From Anthoceros angustus (Eukaryota > Plantae > Anthocerotophyta), in contig MU008164.1 in NCBI GenBank assembly GCA_010909165.1, forward strand, positions 1,364,001 through 1,428,000: a DNA stretch of 64,000 bases, written 5' to 3'. Positions within the stretch are counted from its first letter, which is position 1, and the number at the start of each line of letters is the position of its first letter. This document shows, piece after piece, positions 4,970-28,614 of this stretch. The notes beneath the pieces are model-generated. The model was given only the letters and a program-made list of their open reading frames with translations. It was not told the origin of the DNA and did not search any database. Made by a program: the position numbers and the translations under genes.

Positions 4970-6676
4970 CTATGGTAGAGACCAGTATAGCCCTCTTGTG
5001 AGTGTGGTGTATACCTCGGGACACTGGAATTTCTTCTTGGGGGGCTTTCCTGCTTGGTCTTGGATTTTGTTCTCCATCTCCCTGACCCTGCGAATAACGC
5101 TCGTTAAAATGCTCAACACATCCGCTGTCTGAGAGCCGTGAACGATGGCGGCCATCAGAGCTGTGATAAAGTGTGTGCCTTCCTTGACATCTCTGAAGGA
5201 TTCTTGTCCATGACTGGTGGAGAAAACAATGAGACAATCGCCCACAGAATGCAGGGCTCGGATTTCTCCGGCCCTCTTGCTCGCCACTTGGCTGCTCTCA
5301 ATTTCAGAGTCCTCGGCTTTCTTGCTTGTGGTAAGCCAGCCCCTGCCCCGACAAGCATTGATCAAAAACACCTTTGGCTTATCCGCAAGAAAGCTGGATT
5401 CAGTGATGGGCTTCAAGATATCATCAACAACATATAGCTTTTCGCCTGCTCCACTTATGATGATGTATTCCCTTCCATCCACCTCAATCCCCCCATGAGC
5501 ATTAATGCAACACAGAAAGCAGTCGTCGTCAGCTAGCTCGCGGACCTTCACAACCTGCCTAAGCACTTCTTTGATCTCCTCAGGATCGTCCACCACAATT
5601 TCGGTTTCAAACTTCAGGAACTCGAGAAGACCTTGAAGTCGCCCTCGGTCTACAGCTCCTCCAGATCTGTCCGTTTCCACGCTCACAATCAGTGCCAAAC
5701 CTCTCCGTCCGCCTGCTTGCACGCTGTGGTTAGGATAACTCCCAGCAATGTGTTGCACTTTCTGCACTTCCCTCTCTTCCGGGGATAGGTGTGTGGGAGT
5801 TCCATCAAACGACCTGCCACTGGATTTCAATCCTGCAACAGGTGCAACCTCAGAGTTTGCAAGCATGCTACTGAGAAACGACGTGTGCAGAAGCAGGACA
5901 CCTACACACAGGATTGAGAACAGCCACGAATTCGAACCTTGGAACTCTGCTTCGGGTCTGGCAACGTCCAAGCCCGGCCAGCGCCTCCCCACTTCCACTG
6001 CCTCTTCCGGAATCAGCACGAGGTCGCCCGGGTAGAGCACGTCCGGAACGCTGCCGTTCGATTCCCGCAGCTCCTCCAGCGTGAGGCCGAAGCGCACCGA
6101 GATCTTCCATGCCGAGTCGCCGGGCTCCACAACCACGGCCTTGGTCCGCCCGCGGCGCGTGGGAGCTGAGGGTGGATCCGCGCTGCGGGGAGGCCGTAGG
6201 GAGGCTGCGGGAAGTGCCACGGGCTTGGCCAGCGACACTGCGACGGATGAAGCTGCCAATCCTGGTCCGGAACACGGAGTTGAGGCGAGCGAAGCGGTTG
6301 CGGCACCAGAGGAGGAAGGCAGGCATGAAGATTCAGAGGAGGAGGATGGCTGGGGTGGCACAAAGAGCACTTCACCGGTGACGATGAGGTCTGATTGGAG
6401 GTTGTTCACCTGCTGGAGAAGGCGCCAGGGCACGTTCAGGCGCTGCGCCAACGTCCACAGCGTTTCTCTTTCCTTAACCACGACAACCGAGGAGGAGGAT
6501 GGCCGGGGTGGCACAAAGAGCACTTCGCCGGGGCAGATGACGTCTGAGTTGATGTTGTTCTCCAGCTGGAGAAGGCGCCAGGGCACGCCCAGGCGCTGCG
6601 CCAACGTCCACAGCGTTTCTCCTTCCTCAACCACGACAACCCCGCTGCCGGCGAGCCTGCCGCCAGGCGACGCCAT
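4970..6676 (-). CDS. Triple-LysM / caspase-type cysteine protease (peptidase C14) fusion protein; 568 aa ORF, or 533 aa if the 5833-5937 intron is spliced
   Basis: LysM-like repeats at aa 13-56, 64-107 and 180-223 (VxxGxTLWxLAxRxxV..L...N...DxIxxGxxLxxP). C14 domain aa ~324-565: RGLALIV, RSGGAVD, CINAHG (His394 at 5495-5497), KPKVFLINACRG (Cys442 at 5351-5353), DCLIVFST.HGQESFR...GTHFI.AL, QCPEVYTTLTRGLYW. No stops or frameshifts. Confidence 0.9.
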   Translation of the reverse strand: MASPGGRLAGSGVVVVEEGETLWTLAQRLGVPWRLLQLENNINSDVICPGEVLFVPPRPSSSSVVVVKERETLWTLAQRLNVPWRLLQQVNNLQSDLIVTGEVLFVPPQPSSSSESSCLPSSSGAATASLASTPCSGPGLAASSVAVSLAKPVALPAASLRPPRSADPPSAPTRRGRTKAVVVEPGDSAWKISVRFGLTLEELRESNGSVPDVLYPGDLVLIPEEAVEVGRRWPGLDVARPEAEFQGSNSWLFSILCVGVLLLHTSFLSSMLANSEVAPVAGLKSSGRSFDGTPTHLSPEEREVQKVQHIAGSYPNHSVQAGGRRGLALIVSVETDRSGGAVDRGRLQGLLEFLKFETEIVVDDPEEIKEVLRQVVKVRELADDDCFLCCINAHGGIEVDGREYIIISGAGEKLYVVDDILKPITESSFLADKPKVFLINACRGRGWLTTSKKAEDSEIESSQVASKRAGEIRALHSVGDCLIVFSTSHGQESFRDVKEGTHFITALMAAIVHGSQTADVLSILTSVIRRVREMENKIQDQAGKPPKKKFQCPEVYTTLTRGLYWSLP

Positions 6677-7079
6677 CGCCTCGCCCTAGCCGTCCACCTA
6701 ACCTTCCTCCTCCCCTTCCTCCCCGCCAGATTGCATTATCAGTGCTCCTAAACGGTTTCACGCCAGGGACGAACAGGAATAGCCGTCTACTGCACTAGAT
6801 GGCTGTCGCTGGAGTACCACTCCTGCTGGAGAGAGCCAAGCCAAGCCAATCCAAGCACAGCACAGCACAGCACATTGCAGACAGCAGAGCTACGACATTG
6901 CACCTCGTGTGAAGTGAAGGCACACACTGCTGCCTGGCTTGTGGAAAGATGCACCAAAAAGCGTGCATTTGGGATTGCATTGTGCTGGCCAGCGCGGAGT
7001 AGGCTGCACGCCTCTGCAGCTCAACACGCCAGTGGAGCAAGTGGAGCACGGCCCATCGCAATGCGCATCGTGCATTGTG

Positions 7080-8169: not shown

Positions 8170-8526
8170 TTACTTCTTGTTGCAGTTGGATGGATCCTCC
8201 CTATCTCCGCCTCCCGGACGCTGTACATCATAGCCATCAGATTGTGCAACCAGACGGCCTGGAGTATCACTACGGAGCTGCCTTCCTACATGTAAAGATG
8301 CCACCCTTGCACATGCCTGAAGGAGGCAAACAACCGTTACGGAATTCGGTGCAATAATGCCTTCTTCTCGCATACCCCTGTAAAGACGAAGGGCTTCCTG
8401 TCCCATGCCCTTATGGAAATATCCTGCTATAATGGCATTCCCCATTCCTGCATCTTTCTGATGATGTCTGTCAAAAACGCCCTGAGCATCCTCTAGGCTG
8501 CCACACTTGGAATACATGCCTACCAA
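8170..8526 (-). pseudogene. PLS-class PPR fragment (one S-P-L stretch)
   Basis: MYSKCGSLEDAQGVFD...NAIIAGYFHKGMGQEALRLYRGMREEGIIAPNSVTVVCLLQACARVASLHVGRQL; closely resembles the repeats of the 25405-28614 gene; no gene context on either side. Confidence 0.8.
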
Positions 8527-25404: not shown

Positions 25405-28400
25405 ATGGCTGCCTGGCGCGTTGCACTCCTTTCACAAAGGACGACCCTGCCGAGAGGGCGTCTGGCTGGGCTCGGTGGGCTCCAGTGTTTTGTGGGCGAT
25501 ACACCGTTGTGCGATACCAGGCAATATAAGGAGAGCTCCTGTGGCCCTGAAAAGTTGTGCAAGCAGACGCAGATGGGTCATCGAGCTCCAATATCCAACT
25601 GGAGCATGCCGGATGATGGTGACCCTCGCAGGTCCAGGCCTGCAGGATACGAAACTGTGGTGACTTGTGAAACCGTGAGCCAACTGTGTCGGGAGGGGCA
25701 GCTTGCTGAGGCTGTTGAGGCTCTGGGAGTTCTGGTGCTGGCTGGATGTCGTGTTTCACAATCTGCCTTTCATACTGTGCTGAAAAGTTGTTTGGTGCAA
25801 AAGGATTTGGTTCTGGGTCGCCGTGCCCATGCTCTCACTGTGGAAAAGGGTTATGAGGTGGACACTTTCTTGTGCAACCAGGTCATGCGGATGTATGCTT
25901 CTCATGCCAGGTTGCAGGAGGCCATGGATGCATTTACGTTGGTGGCCGAACCAGATGCCTTCATGTGGTCTTCTATAATCTCTGCATATGTGAGCCATGG
26001 GCAAGCTAAGCAGGCCATAGAATTATATCACCGAATGCGCAGGTCAAGCGTGAAGCCAGATGGGCATGTGTTTGTGGCTGCCCTTCAGGCTTGTGCCAGG
26101 GGAGGGGACTTGAAGGCAGGGCAGCAAGTGCACGCTGATGTTTTGGCCAGCGGCGTTGAGCCTCATTTGTTTGTTTGGAATTGCTTGGTGGACATGTATG
26201 CCAAGTGTGGCAGCTTGGAAGACGCTCGAAGAGTGTTCGATGGACTTGGTGAGAAAGATGTGGTGACGTGGAATGCCATGATAGCAGGGTATTCCCAGCA
26301 GGGGATGGGTCATGAAGCCCTTCGTCTTTACAGTGCTATGCAAGAAGCAGGCATTGCTGTGCGTACTTCTGTGACATTTATCTGCCTCCTCCAGGCATGT
26401 GGAAGTGTGGGTACCCTGGCATTGGAGAATGGGAAGCAGCTTCATGCAGAAATCAAAGAACGAGGTGTTCTGACAGATGTGTTTGTAGCCAACAGCTTGG
26501 TAGACATGTATGCAAAGTGTGGCAGCTTGGCAGACGCCCGAAGGGTGTTTGATGGGCTCGGTATAAAAGATGTGGTGACGTGGAATGCCATGATTTCAGG
26601 ATATTCCCAGCAGGGAATGGGCCAGGAAGCTCTTTGTACTTACGGGGCTATGCAAGACGAGGGCAGTGCTGCACCTGATTCTGTAACGTTTGCGTGCGCC
26701 CTGCAAGCTTGTGCAAGTCTGGGTACCTCGGCTCTGGAAAAGGGGAAGGACCTTCATGCTCAAGTTAGGGAACGAGGGCTTCAGGCTGATGTGTTTGTAG
26801 CCAGTAGTTTAGTAAACATGTATGCAAAGTGTGGCAGCTTGCAGGATGCTCAGGGTGTTTTTTACTTGTTTGGTCAGAAGAATGCAGTGGCACAAAATGC
26901 CATGATAGCGGGGTATGCCCAGCAGGGAATGGGTCAGGAGGCTCTTCATCTTCACAGTGCGATGCAAGACGAAGGCATCCCTTTACCCGATGCTTCTACA
27001 TTTGTGTCTCTCCTGCAGGCATGTGCAACTGTAGGCACCCCAGCTCTGGAAAAGGGGAGACAGCTCCATGCACAAATCGTAAAACGTGGACTTCAAATTG
27101 ATGTTGTTTTAGGCTGCAGCCTAGTTAACATGTATGCCAAGTGTGGCAGTTTGGAGGATGCTGAAAGAGTGTTTGATGGACTTGGTGAAAAGAACGTGGT
27201 CACGTGGAATGCTATAATTGCAGGATATGCAAAAGGTGGCATGTTAGAAGACGCTCAAAGAACGTTCGTCAAGCTTCCTAAGAAGGACGTGGTGACATGG
27301 AATGCCATGATTGCAGGCTACTCGCAGCAAGGCATGGGCCATGAAGCTCTTCTTCTTTACAAAGCTATGCAAGAAGAGGGTGTTGTTGAACCCGATTCTG
27401 TGACATTTCTTAGCGCCCTCCAGGCATGTGCAAGTGTGGGCACCCCCGCTTTGGAGATGGGAAAGCAGCTTCACTCACAGATTGGGGACCAAGGGCTTGT
27501 GCCCGATGTTCTTGTAGCCAACAGTTTGGTGAACATGTATGCAAAGTGTGGCAGCTTGGAAGAAGCTCGAGCCGTGTTTGACGGGCTTCTCCAAAAAGAT
27601 GTGGTGACATGGACGGCTCTAATTTCCGGATATTCACAGCATGGCATGGGTCAGGAAGCCATTCATCTCTACAGTGCTATGCAAGAAGAAGGCATTGTTG
27701 CACTCAATCCTGTGACATTTGCTTGCCTCCTGCAGGCATGTGCAAATGTGGCAGCTTTGTGTGTCGGAATGCAGCTTCATGCAGAGATCAAAGAACACGG
27801 GCTTCAAGCTGACGTGCTTGTAGCCTGCAGTTTGATAAATATGTATGGGAAGTGCGGGAGCATGACAAATGCACAGCTGGTGTTTGAGGCATTGCCCAAA
27901 CGAGACGAAGTTGCATGGAACGCACTGATAGCAGGCTATGCCTGTCAAGGAGACAGTGACGTTGTCTTTGACCTGCTCCAGAGAATGAGAGAGGATGGCA
28001 TACAGCCAGCAGGCATCACGTTCCTCAGTGTGCTCACAGCATGCAGTCATGCCGGTCTAGTGAACCAGGGGCGGGAGTACTTTGCAACCATGAGCAAACA
28101 CTACGACATCACTCCCGAGGTGGAGCACTACACATGCATGGTGGATCTCCTCGGCCGGGCAGGCCGTGTAGACGAGTCACTAGCATTGGTAAGGACAATG
28201 CCTGTACACCCAAGTGCTGCCCTTTGGCACAGTCTATTGGGTGCTTGTCGAAAGTGGAGCAACGTGACGGTGGGACTGTATGCTTTCCACGAAGCAGTGA
28301 AGCTAGACCAGAGAGACACAGCGGCATATGTGTTGATGTCAAACATATACACCAGCGCCCACATGTGGGAGCAGGCACAGGAGATGCATGCAAGGAGGAA

Positions 28401-28614
28401 GGCAATCGGAGCATGGAAGCAGCCGGGCCAGAGCTGGTGGACAGACATGGACGGTGTGGTGCATAGCTTCCTGGTAGGGGATAAGAAGCATCCCGAAGGT
28501 GATGTCATATATGAAAGGCTAAAAGATCTCTTCCTCAAATTGAAGGAACAAGGGTATGTGCCACACCTGGACTCCTCGCATGTGGAATCTGGCTATCGCA
28601 TCTGCCTTGAATAA
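25405..28614 (+). CDS. Intronless PLS-class PPR protein (1069 aa) with E1-E2 and a truncated DYW:WW domain; organellar RNA-editing factor family
   Basis: Serial P-L-S motifs (DVVTWNAMIAGY / VTFxxxLQAC / VANSLVxMYAKCGSL), HYTCMVDLLGRAG, AYVLMSNIY, WKQPGQSWW...HSFLVGD; the ORF ends before HxE/CxxC. Confidence 0.95.
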   Translation: MAAWRVALLSQRTTLPRGRLAGLGGLQCFVGDTPLCDTRQYKESSCGPEKLCKQTQMGHRAPISNWSMPDDGDPRRSRPAGYETVVTCETVSQLCREGQLAEAVEALGVLVLAGCRVSQSAFHTVLKSCLVQKDLVLGRRAHALTVEKGYEVDTFLCNQVMRMYASHARLQEAMDAFTLVAEPDAFMWSSIISAYVSHGQAKQAIELYHRMRRSSVKPDGHVFVAALQACARGGDLKAGQQVHADVLASGVEPHLFVWNCLVDMYAKCGSLEDARRVFDGLGEKDVVTWNAMIAGYSQQGMGHEALRLYSAMQEAGIAVRTSVTFICLLQACGSVGTLALENGKQLHAEIKERGVLTDVFVANSLVDMYAKCGSLADARRVFDGLGIKDVVTWNAMISGYSQQGMGQEALCTYGAMQDEGSAAPDSVTFACALQACASLGTSALEKGKDLHAQVRERGLQADVFVASSLVNMYAKCGSLQDAQGVFYLFGQKNAVAQNAMIAGYAQQGMGQEALHLHSAMQDEGIPLPDASTFVSLLQACATVGTPALEKGRQLHAQIVKRGLQIDVVLGCSLVNMYAKCGSLEDAERVFDGLGEKNVVTWNAIIAGYAKGGMLEDAQRTFVKLPKKDVVTWNAMIAGYSQQGMGHEALLLYKAMQEEGVVEPDSVTFLSALQACASVGTPALEMGKQLHSQIGDQGLVPDVLVANSLVNMYAKCGSLEEARAVFDGLLQKDVVTWTALISGYSQHGMGQEAIHLYSAMQEEGIVALNPVTFACLLQACANVAALCVGMQLHAEIKEHGLQADVLVACSLINMYGKCGSMTNAQLVFEALPKRDEVAWNALIAGYACQGDSDVVFDLLQRMREDGIQPAGITFLSVLTACSHAGLVNQGREYFATMSKHYDITPEVEHYTCMVDLLGRAGRVDESLALVRTMPVHPSAALWHSLLGACRKWSNVTVGLYAFHEAVKLDQRDTAAYVLMSNIYTSAHMWEQAQEMHARRKAIGAWKQPGQSWWTDMDGVVHSFLVGDKKHPEGDVIYERLKDLFLKLKEQGYVPHLDSSHVESGYRICLE

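Follow-up and report, generated by a model that had tools for sequence, protein, structure and literature searches.

The analysis of a 64,000-nucleotide stretch of the hornwort Anthoceros angustus, referred to here as the window, focused on one gene of its minus strand in which three LysM modules precede a caspase-type protease domain. The open reading frame (ORF; 4970..6676) runs for 568 codons plus the stop when read through, and for 533 aa after removal of an in-frame 105-nt segment with GT..AG ends (5833..5937, aa 247-281), which is its sole hydrophobic stretch and most likely a phase-1 intron. Features of this gene are all on the minus strand, and residue numbers are those of the read-through. 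Pfam assigned the first part to LysM (PF01476; three modules, 1.5e-31, 108.5 bits against a cut-off of 20.9), namely LysM 1 (6506..6637, aa 14-57), LysM 2 (6356..6481, aa 66-107) and LysM 3 (6008..6130, aa 183-223). Moreover, it matched Peptidase_C14 over the full domain length at aa 325-564 (4985..5704; E 1.1e-30), an assignment shared by alignments to PDB sequences and by an AlphaFold2 (AF2) model.

Active-site residues and predicted fold

Arg337 (AGA, 5666..5668), in the motif DRSGGAVD, and Arg495 (AGA, 5192..5194), in ESFRD, align to caspase Arg179 in the S1 pocket and to Arg341 in S1/S3 on loop L3, the second arginine following Ser493-Phe494 as the equivalents of Ser339-Trp340. The catalytic His394 (CAT, 5495..5497) lies in NAHGG and is followed by the oxyanion Gly395, the catalytic Cys442 (TGT, 5351..5353) lies in INACRG, and Asn440 (AAT, 5357..5359) stands at the position of caspase Gln283. 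A first-pass annotation of this DNA had named the two arginines, Asn440 and Asp456, and had put the arginines at Arg179 and Arg341 and the asparagine at Gln283. Coordinates and residues proved exact for R337, N440, C442, H394, R495 and D456, and its assignments held in the alignments, where both arginines fall in the same register against caspase-8 and caspase-6 and N440 pairs with the Gln of caspase-8 QACQG.

A phmmer comparison with all PDB sequences placed caspase-8 at the top of the protease matches (5e-15), followed by caspase-3 and insect caspases. Its alignment paired R337 with the Arg of caspase-8 RDRNGT, NAHG with SHG, NACRG with QACQG, and SFR with SYR, with no gap between the catalytic Cys and the second Arg. 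A profile of nine members of the clade described below retrieved caspase-6 over the full domain (E 2.8e-36) in an identical register that puts R-x-G-G/T on R64-R-G-T. Overall, R337, H394, C442 and R495 align unambiguously to caspase Arg179, His237, Cys285 and Arg341. The spacings in the hornwort protein (Arg-57-His, Cys-53-Arg and Cys-14-Asp) are identical in human caspase-8, whose corresponding residues are R260, H317, C360, D374 and R413. The best 50-60 rows of each PDB comparison (two sequence searches, Foldseek and VIA-align) held only caspases, and the two arginine columns were near-invariant in the 150 best database matches (R in 140/150 and 144/150). Given these columns and the Pfam score, the resemblance to C14 reflects homology rather than chance.

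These observations were further strengthened by an AF2 model of the caspase domain built on a 77-sequence alignment, with a mean predicted local distance difference test score (pLDDT) of 90.7 and a predicted template-modelling score of 0.89. Mean pLDDT is 94 in the blocks that contain R337 and R495 and 96 in the one that ends at Asn440; in the block that starts at Cys442 it is 72, lowered by the linker that follows. All of the top 50 Foldseek matches were caspases (E ~5e-17). The comparison with caspase-3 and caspase-8 that the first-pass annotation had proposed recovered the caspase fold: VIA-align gave a Z of 27.7 and a root-mean-square deviation (rmsd) of 2.4 A over 209 residues against caspase-3, at 30% identity, and an rmsd of 1.6 A over 204 residues against zymogen caspase-8. 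In the model, the domain has the caspase-haemoglobinase fold with a six-stranded sheet and p20/p10-like halves. Beyond this fold, the domain shares with animal caspases (MEROPS C14A; caspase-8, -6 and -3) the His/Cys dyad in SHG- and QACxG-like motifs, the Arg179 and Arg341 equivalents, the Ser-aromatic-Arg motif of loop L3 at equal length, and a C-terminal strand resembling KQxP...L.K.LYF, here FQCPEVYTTLTRGLYW. Unlike animal caspases, it carries Asn for Gln283, is encoded by a plant, and is preceded by three LysM modules rather than by a CARD, DED or Death prodomain. Moreover, its S2-S4 residues are unlike those of animal caspases, with His502, as mapped through the phmmer alignment, at the position of caspase-3 Trp214.

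In plants, family C14 is accepted to be represented by metacaspases; together with the paracaspase MALT1 (C14B), these share the clan CD caspase-haemoglobinase fold and dyad of the hornwort protein. Unlike the hornwort protein, with its Arg/Asn/Arg, C14B enzymes have acidic pockets and cut after Arg/Lys (PMC4357240). Specifically, the caspase S1 triad of Arg/Gln/Arg (Arg87, Gln184 and Arg233 in caspase-7) builds a basic Asp-binding pocket, whereas MALT1 has Asp365, Asp462 and Glu500 at the three equivalent positions (PMC4357240). The sequence places Arg337, Asn440 and Arg495 there, so that the acidic C14B-type pocket is absent and the predicted pocket is of the caspase kind, not of the meta- or paracaspase kind. 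A basic caspase-type S1 pocket is thus supported by the alignment, by a confident fold model, by the invariance of the arginines and by the loss of arginine in relatives with a dead dyad.

A bryophyte clade of caspase-type domains

HMMER, run exhaustively over 1.84 billion representatives, returned 1535 relatives, the best of which are plant-like ORFs. The named plant members are transcripts of the hornwort Nothoceros aenigmaticus and protein records of Marchantia paleacea (KAG6554914.1) and Riccia fluitans (KAL2622267.1), and the Nothoceros transcripts indicate that relatives of the gene are expressed in plants. The remainder of the top 150 consists largely of animal caspases, named insect caspases included, and the best non-plant matches are animal caspases with DED, CARD, Death or PYRIN domains. 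By sequence the domain is thus nearer to C14A than to metacaspases, paracaspases or orthocaspases. A Pfam scan of the 115 non-bryophyte best matches found DED in 10, CARD in 7, Death in 2 and PYRIN in 2, and LysM in none of them.

In a maximum-likelihood tree, which was rooted by midpoint only and in which many rows have no taxon label, 21 bryophyte rows form one cluster (SH-like approximate likelihood-ratio test, 93). This cluster stands outside the other ~120 rows, largely animal caspases, and is nested in no subgroup of them. On this sequence evidence, the gene belongs to a previously undescribed bryophyte clade of caspase-type domains. Two further sequences, P0015 and P0079, which carry INCCRG and INTCRG motifs, adjoin the clade in the tree and could be its nearest non-plant kin; a p300/CBP-like gene on the P0015 contig marks that contig as eukaryotic.

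The conservation pattern within the clade bears directly on the pocket. R337, H394, G395 and R495 show no variation across the nine aligned members, and of the 28 members surveyed, all 19 that are complete and have their His/Cys dyad intact retain both arginines. The R495 equivalent is lost, to Pro or Gln, in four of the five members with a broken dyad, one of which also lacks R337. Such a pattern would be expected if selection maintained a functional acid-binding pocket. A hallmark of the clade is Asn in place of Gln283, present in 24/28 members, and the C-terminal interface strand is conserved.

Contamination by animal DNA or a recent transfer from an animal was ruled out, as the ORF lies among PLS-E+ PPR genes in the same window, has kin in Marchantia, Riccia and Nothoceros, and belongs to a clade nested in no animal group. 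A bacterial origin, or a bacterial-type caspase-like defence protease, found no support: PADLOC returned nothing, and the NCBIfam bacterial caspase model reached only 16 bits. A scan of 185,579 prokaryote genomes, pattern-based and hence not exhaustive, found nothing. A metagenome scan yielded just 5 weak loci.

There are relatives in which a caspase-type ORF lies 190-280 nt upstream of an ORF with NB-ARC and leucine-rich repeat (LRR) domains on the same strand. On two contigs, L005 and L006, which are probably bryophyte, consensus splice sites join the caspase exon in frame to the NB-ARC-LRR exon (L005:10001-13596, CTG/GTAATT...TTGCAG/; L006:1855-5564, CAG/GTAAGT...TTACAG/; slashes mark the cuts), and both are therefore predicted fusions of a caspase with a nucleotide-binding leucine-rich repeat receptor (NLR). 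Each is accompanied by a second tandem gene (L005:14712-19931 and L006:7538-12643) in which a dyad-dead caspase domain (SAYG) that has lost its second arginine is followed by an alpha/beta-hydrolase ORF and NB-ARC-LRR; this second gene resembles a decoy, or a regulatory paralogue, next to an active one. Fusions of a hydrolase and a caspase domain also occur in Marchantia paleacea and in one further clade member. A survey of the N-terminal domains of plant NLRs mentions no protease domain (PMC11218826). By analogy with these gene structures, the clade seems to supply immune-type receptors with an output module, and the position of relatives as N-terminal exons of NB-ARC-LRR genes suggests a role in immunity or cell death. 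An NB-ARC gene was also sought downstream of the hornwort ORF in the window, and tblastn found none, only a PPR E-motif fragment.

P1 preference, the LysM exon and competing explanations

The first-pass annotation had called the protein a true aspartase. The basic pocket of caspase type is upheld by alignment, fold and the clade arginines, but strict Asp specificity overreaches, as Gln283 is replaced by Asn throughout the clade. Asn440 retains the amide and is one methylene shorter than Gln. In QACRG it is the Gln that lines the pocket for the substrate, changed preferences were expected of variant caspases in a review of 2000, and Drosophila DRONC, with PFCRG, cleaves after Glu in addition to Asp (PMC2180229). 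Given the clade-wide Asn and this precedent, the enzyme is predicted to cut after an acidic P1 residue, Asp and possibly also Glu, rather than to be a strict aspartase.

A possible but unlikely alternative takes this further, with Asn deepening S1 so that the pocket prefers Glu or accepts both residues in the manner of a DRONC-like glutamase/aspartase. This would be in keeping with Asn440 being the rule of the clade, and with the linker, which holds SEIE/S in addition to KAED/S; in several clade linkers Glu is the only acidic residue that precedes a small one. The parallel with DRONC is nevertheless partial. DRONC shares a pocket-lining residue other than Gln ahead of the Cys and keeps an acidic P1 widened to Glu, but it differs at two positions of the pentapeptide, whereas the hornwort protein has a plain Gln-to-Asn change, and it has a CARD and is activated by the Dark apoptosome (PMC2180229). 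Asn is also found at this position in ~7 animal-type sequences among the best matches.

The LysM half was examined in relation to the 105-nt segment, which outscores every other GT-AG pair in the ORF (CAAG/GTTCGA ... TGCAG/G) and has a T fraction of 0.34 against 0.19 in its flanks. Further plant contigs encode stand-alone LysM homologues (P0165, with 46% identity across 75% of the query, and P0166) that share the start Met and whose first exon ends in the same place at a phase-1 donor (CAAG/GTGAGC or AAAG/GTCGAC). The LysM genes homologous to the first exon of the window gene lie at L013:1199-2100 and L014:66-560, and the hydrophobic C-termini of P0165 and P0166 are intron read-through, artefacts of prokaryote-style gene calling. 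We consider it very probable that the 105-nt segment is an intron, and with this reading the product is a soluble intracellular protein of 533 aa with neither signal peptide nor transmembrane helix. Homology to the stand-alone LysM genes ends exactly at the exon boundary. Moreover, the GC content at third codon positions (GC3) breaks inside the ORF (4973-6676), from 0.77-0.81 in the LysM exon to 0.545 in the caspase part, in keeping with two exons of different history. The simplest reading of these sequences is that exon shuffling joined the first exon of a LysM gene to a caspase-domain exon. The LysM half, used as a query, retrieved nothing but stand-alone LysM genes, whose contigs lack a caspase.

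It is unlikely that the segment is instead retained as a transmembrane helix between a LysM ectodomain and a cytosolic caspase, an arrangement like that of LysM receptor kinases with a protease in place of the kinase. The segment is in frame and free of stops, its Kyte-Doolittle mean reaches 2.0 over 19 residues, and the positive charges after it (K283 and R287) would suit a caspase on the cytosolic side. Against this, the ORF has no signal peptide at its N-terminus, it shares its start Met with non-secreted LysM homologues, and the frame is closed by a stop 4 codons ahead of the ATG. The donor and its phase are common to homologues whose downstream hydrophobic read-through is clearly intronic, the segment is T-rich with a TGCAG/G acceptor, and a 35-codon open stretch arises by chance in about one-fifth of introns. 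An upstream signal-peptide exon was also considered. An 88-codon ORF with a signal-peptide-like hydrophobic run, ALLSAMCCAVLCLDWLGLALSS, lies at 6795-7061 on the minus strand; its use as such an exon is not supported, since inspection by eye found no in-phase donor/acceptor pair and the start Met of the LysM exon is conserved.

Improbable to a similar degree is a young chimera that lacks function or has lost it, an exon-shuffling product drifting or silent whose motifs are intact only because it is recent. The sharp GC3 break and the LysM homology ending at the exon boundary agree with such an origin, as does the lack of an orthologue or transcript of this gene in a library representing ~15 billion public proteins, where a word-index search with the caspase half found nothing. 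LysM 1 and LysM 2 are a recent internal duplication of 153 nt (6356-6637) with 16 nucleotide differences, affecting 11 codons nonsynonymously and 2 synonymously. On the other side, the 1.7-kb ORF is unbroken, all catalytic and pocket residues are intact where truly dead relatives have lost His and Arg, and the splice donor and its phase are preserved. Moreover, the caspase domain shares no more than 33-41% identity with its closest relatives, a distance which argues that its frame has long been maintained. Finally, a caspase-fold protease of non-acidic specificity, or a pure scaffold, is very improbable even though three residues do not suffice for a certain reading of specificity and the S2-S4 residues depart from those of animal caspases, because the dyad, the oxyanion Gly, the Ser-aromatic-Arg motif of L3 and both arginines are all present, the arginines co-vary with catalytic integrity across the clade, and all characterised C14 enzymes with Arg/Arg at these positions are acid-directed (PMC4357240).

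Overall, we favour, with a probability of about 0.6, a gene encoding an intracellular soluble protein in which three LysM modules are joined to a C14A-type cysteine protease with an acidic-P1 pocket, as a member of a bryophyte-specific clade. In the mechanism that we propose, the protease would probably be inactive while monomeric, and activation would come from induced proximity or from dimerisation by way of the conserved C-terminal beta-strand; cleavage of the linker may or may not take part. LysM is a module that binds N-acetylglucosamine glycans. In this gene the modules may, by analogy, form a sensing or clustering part, acting speculatively as trigger or address through binding of chitin or peptidoglycan fragments or through self-association. 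The protein could then be a one-chain sensor-protease in immunity or cell death, a speculative parallel to its caspase-NB-ARC-LRR relatives.

The best candidate for linker cleavage is Asp456/Ser457. The intersubunit-like linker (G444-V478, aa 444-478, 5243..5347), an AF2 helix with pLDDT 64-79, is 35 aa long, where the first-pass annotation had given ~34; the KAED/S and SEIE/S sites that it had pointed out are present, the second ending at Glu460 before Ser461. Asp456 (GAC, 5309..5311) stands at the position of caspase-8 D374, the linker aligning without gaps so that KAED456/SE falls on VETD374/SE, and D374 is the main p18/p10 processing site of caspase-8. In many clade linkers an acidic residue (Asp or Glu) precedes a small one 7-14 residues past CRG, at a variable position, and we estimate the chance of an Asp plus small residue somewhere in an acidic linker of 35 aa at ~1/3. 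The earlier proposal of self-processing into p20/p10-like subunits is thus retained for its positional match to caspase-8 and weakened by the clade, and self-cleavage at Asp456/Ser457 is a candidate.

Several points weigh against the reading that we favour. Clade linkers vary from 17 to 50 aa and conserve no Asp position, Asp456 included. The placement of both arginines in S1 is one that we infer from alignment and fold together, and we know of no characterised caspase with a tested Asn at the Gln283 position. The dyad-dead members that have lost Arg belong partly to one subclade, and the independent arginine losses are therefore few. The exhaustive search brought up no orthologue of this gene, its ceiling being 37% identity to the caspase domain. 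The excess of nonsynonymous over synonymous changes between LysM 1 and LysM 2 fits relaxed and diversifying selection alike, and ligand binding by LysM in the cytosol is presumed and speculative.

Relation to known systems and genomic surroundings

The kind of protease described here is already known, and what is new is its occurrence in a plant, the Asn variant and the fusion to LysM. A search of the literature found no caspase-type (C14A-like) domains and no LysM-caspase or caspase-NLR fusions described in plants. Decades of search for the proteases behind plant caspase-like activities (DEVDase and YVADase) settled on unrelated enzymes, which were accepted because plants were thought to have only Arg/Lys-specific metacaspases. 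Papers of 2023 and 2025 still hold caspases to be restricted to animals and absent from plants (PMC10896300, PMC12521494). The suggestion that the gene is a source of caspase-like activity in its lineage is plausible for bryophytes and does not extend to seed plants: no named plant relative recovered in this analysis comes from a seed plant, and the clade leaves their caspase-like activity unexplained.

The combination of a caspase-type protease with a pattern-sensing module recalls NLR/inflammasome-caspase-1, Apaf-1-caspase-9 and the bacterial and fungal STAND proteins with caspase-like effectors. Unlike those assemblies, the hornwort protein would hold sensor and protease in one polypeptide, with LysM rather than NB-ARC as the sensor and no adaptor death-fold domain, and unlike the bacterial systems it matches no bacterial defence model. 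With plant LysM proteins, both the non-secreted family and the CERK1-type receptor kinases, it shares LysM as a glycan-recognition front end; it differs from them in that the output is a caspase-type protease, not a kinase or nothing, and in that it probably has no ectodomain topology.

A wider proposal, which we put forward tentatively and at slightly less than even odds, is that bryophytes possess an acid-directed (Asp/Glu) clade of caspases, sister to animal caspases and not to metacaspases, that is wired to sensing modules, LysM here and NB-ARC-LRR in relatives. If true, it would provide a plant counterpart of inflammasome and apoptosome logic in single polypeptides, overturn the textbook claim that plants are caspase-free, and suggest that the caspase lineage is older than animals or has moved between kingdoms. 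The clade thus bears on the origin of caspases. A plant domain with caspase fold, dyad and Arg/Arg pocket, under visible constraint in hornworts and liverworts, makes the question directly testable, and the LysM and NLR-type fusions offer a simple model of a sensor driving a death protease without adaptor domains.

The remainder of the 64-kb window holds PPR genes and fragments, a CysRS exon and a copia-like element. The caspase gene is flanked by an intact PLS-class PPR gene of 1069 aa with E and E+ motifs (25405-28614, plus strand) and by PPR fragments at 8170-8526 and 1786-2049, both on the minus strand. From these PPR sequences, the window is nuclear DNA of a plant lineage in which RNA-editing factors abound. 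At 46-468 lies a tandem repeat that is open on both strands, with units such as YFRLIINRLGRAMYMECHL, which is probably a minisatellite.

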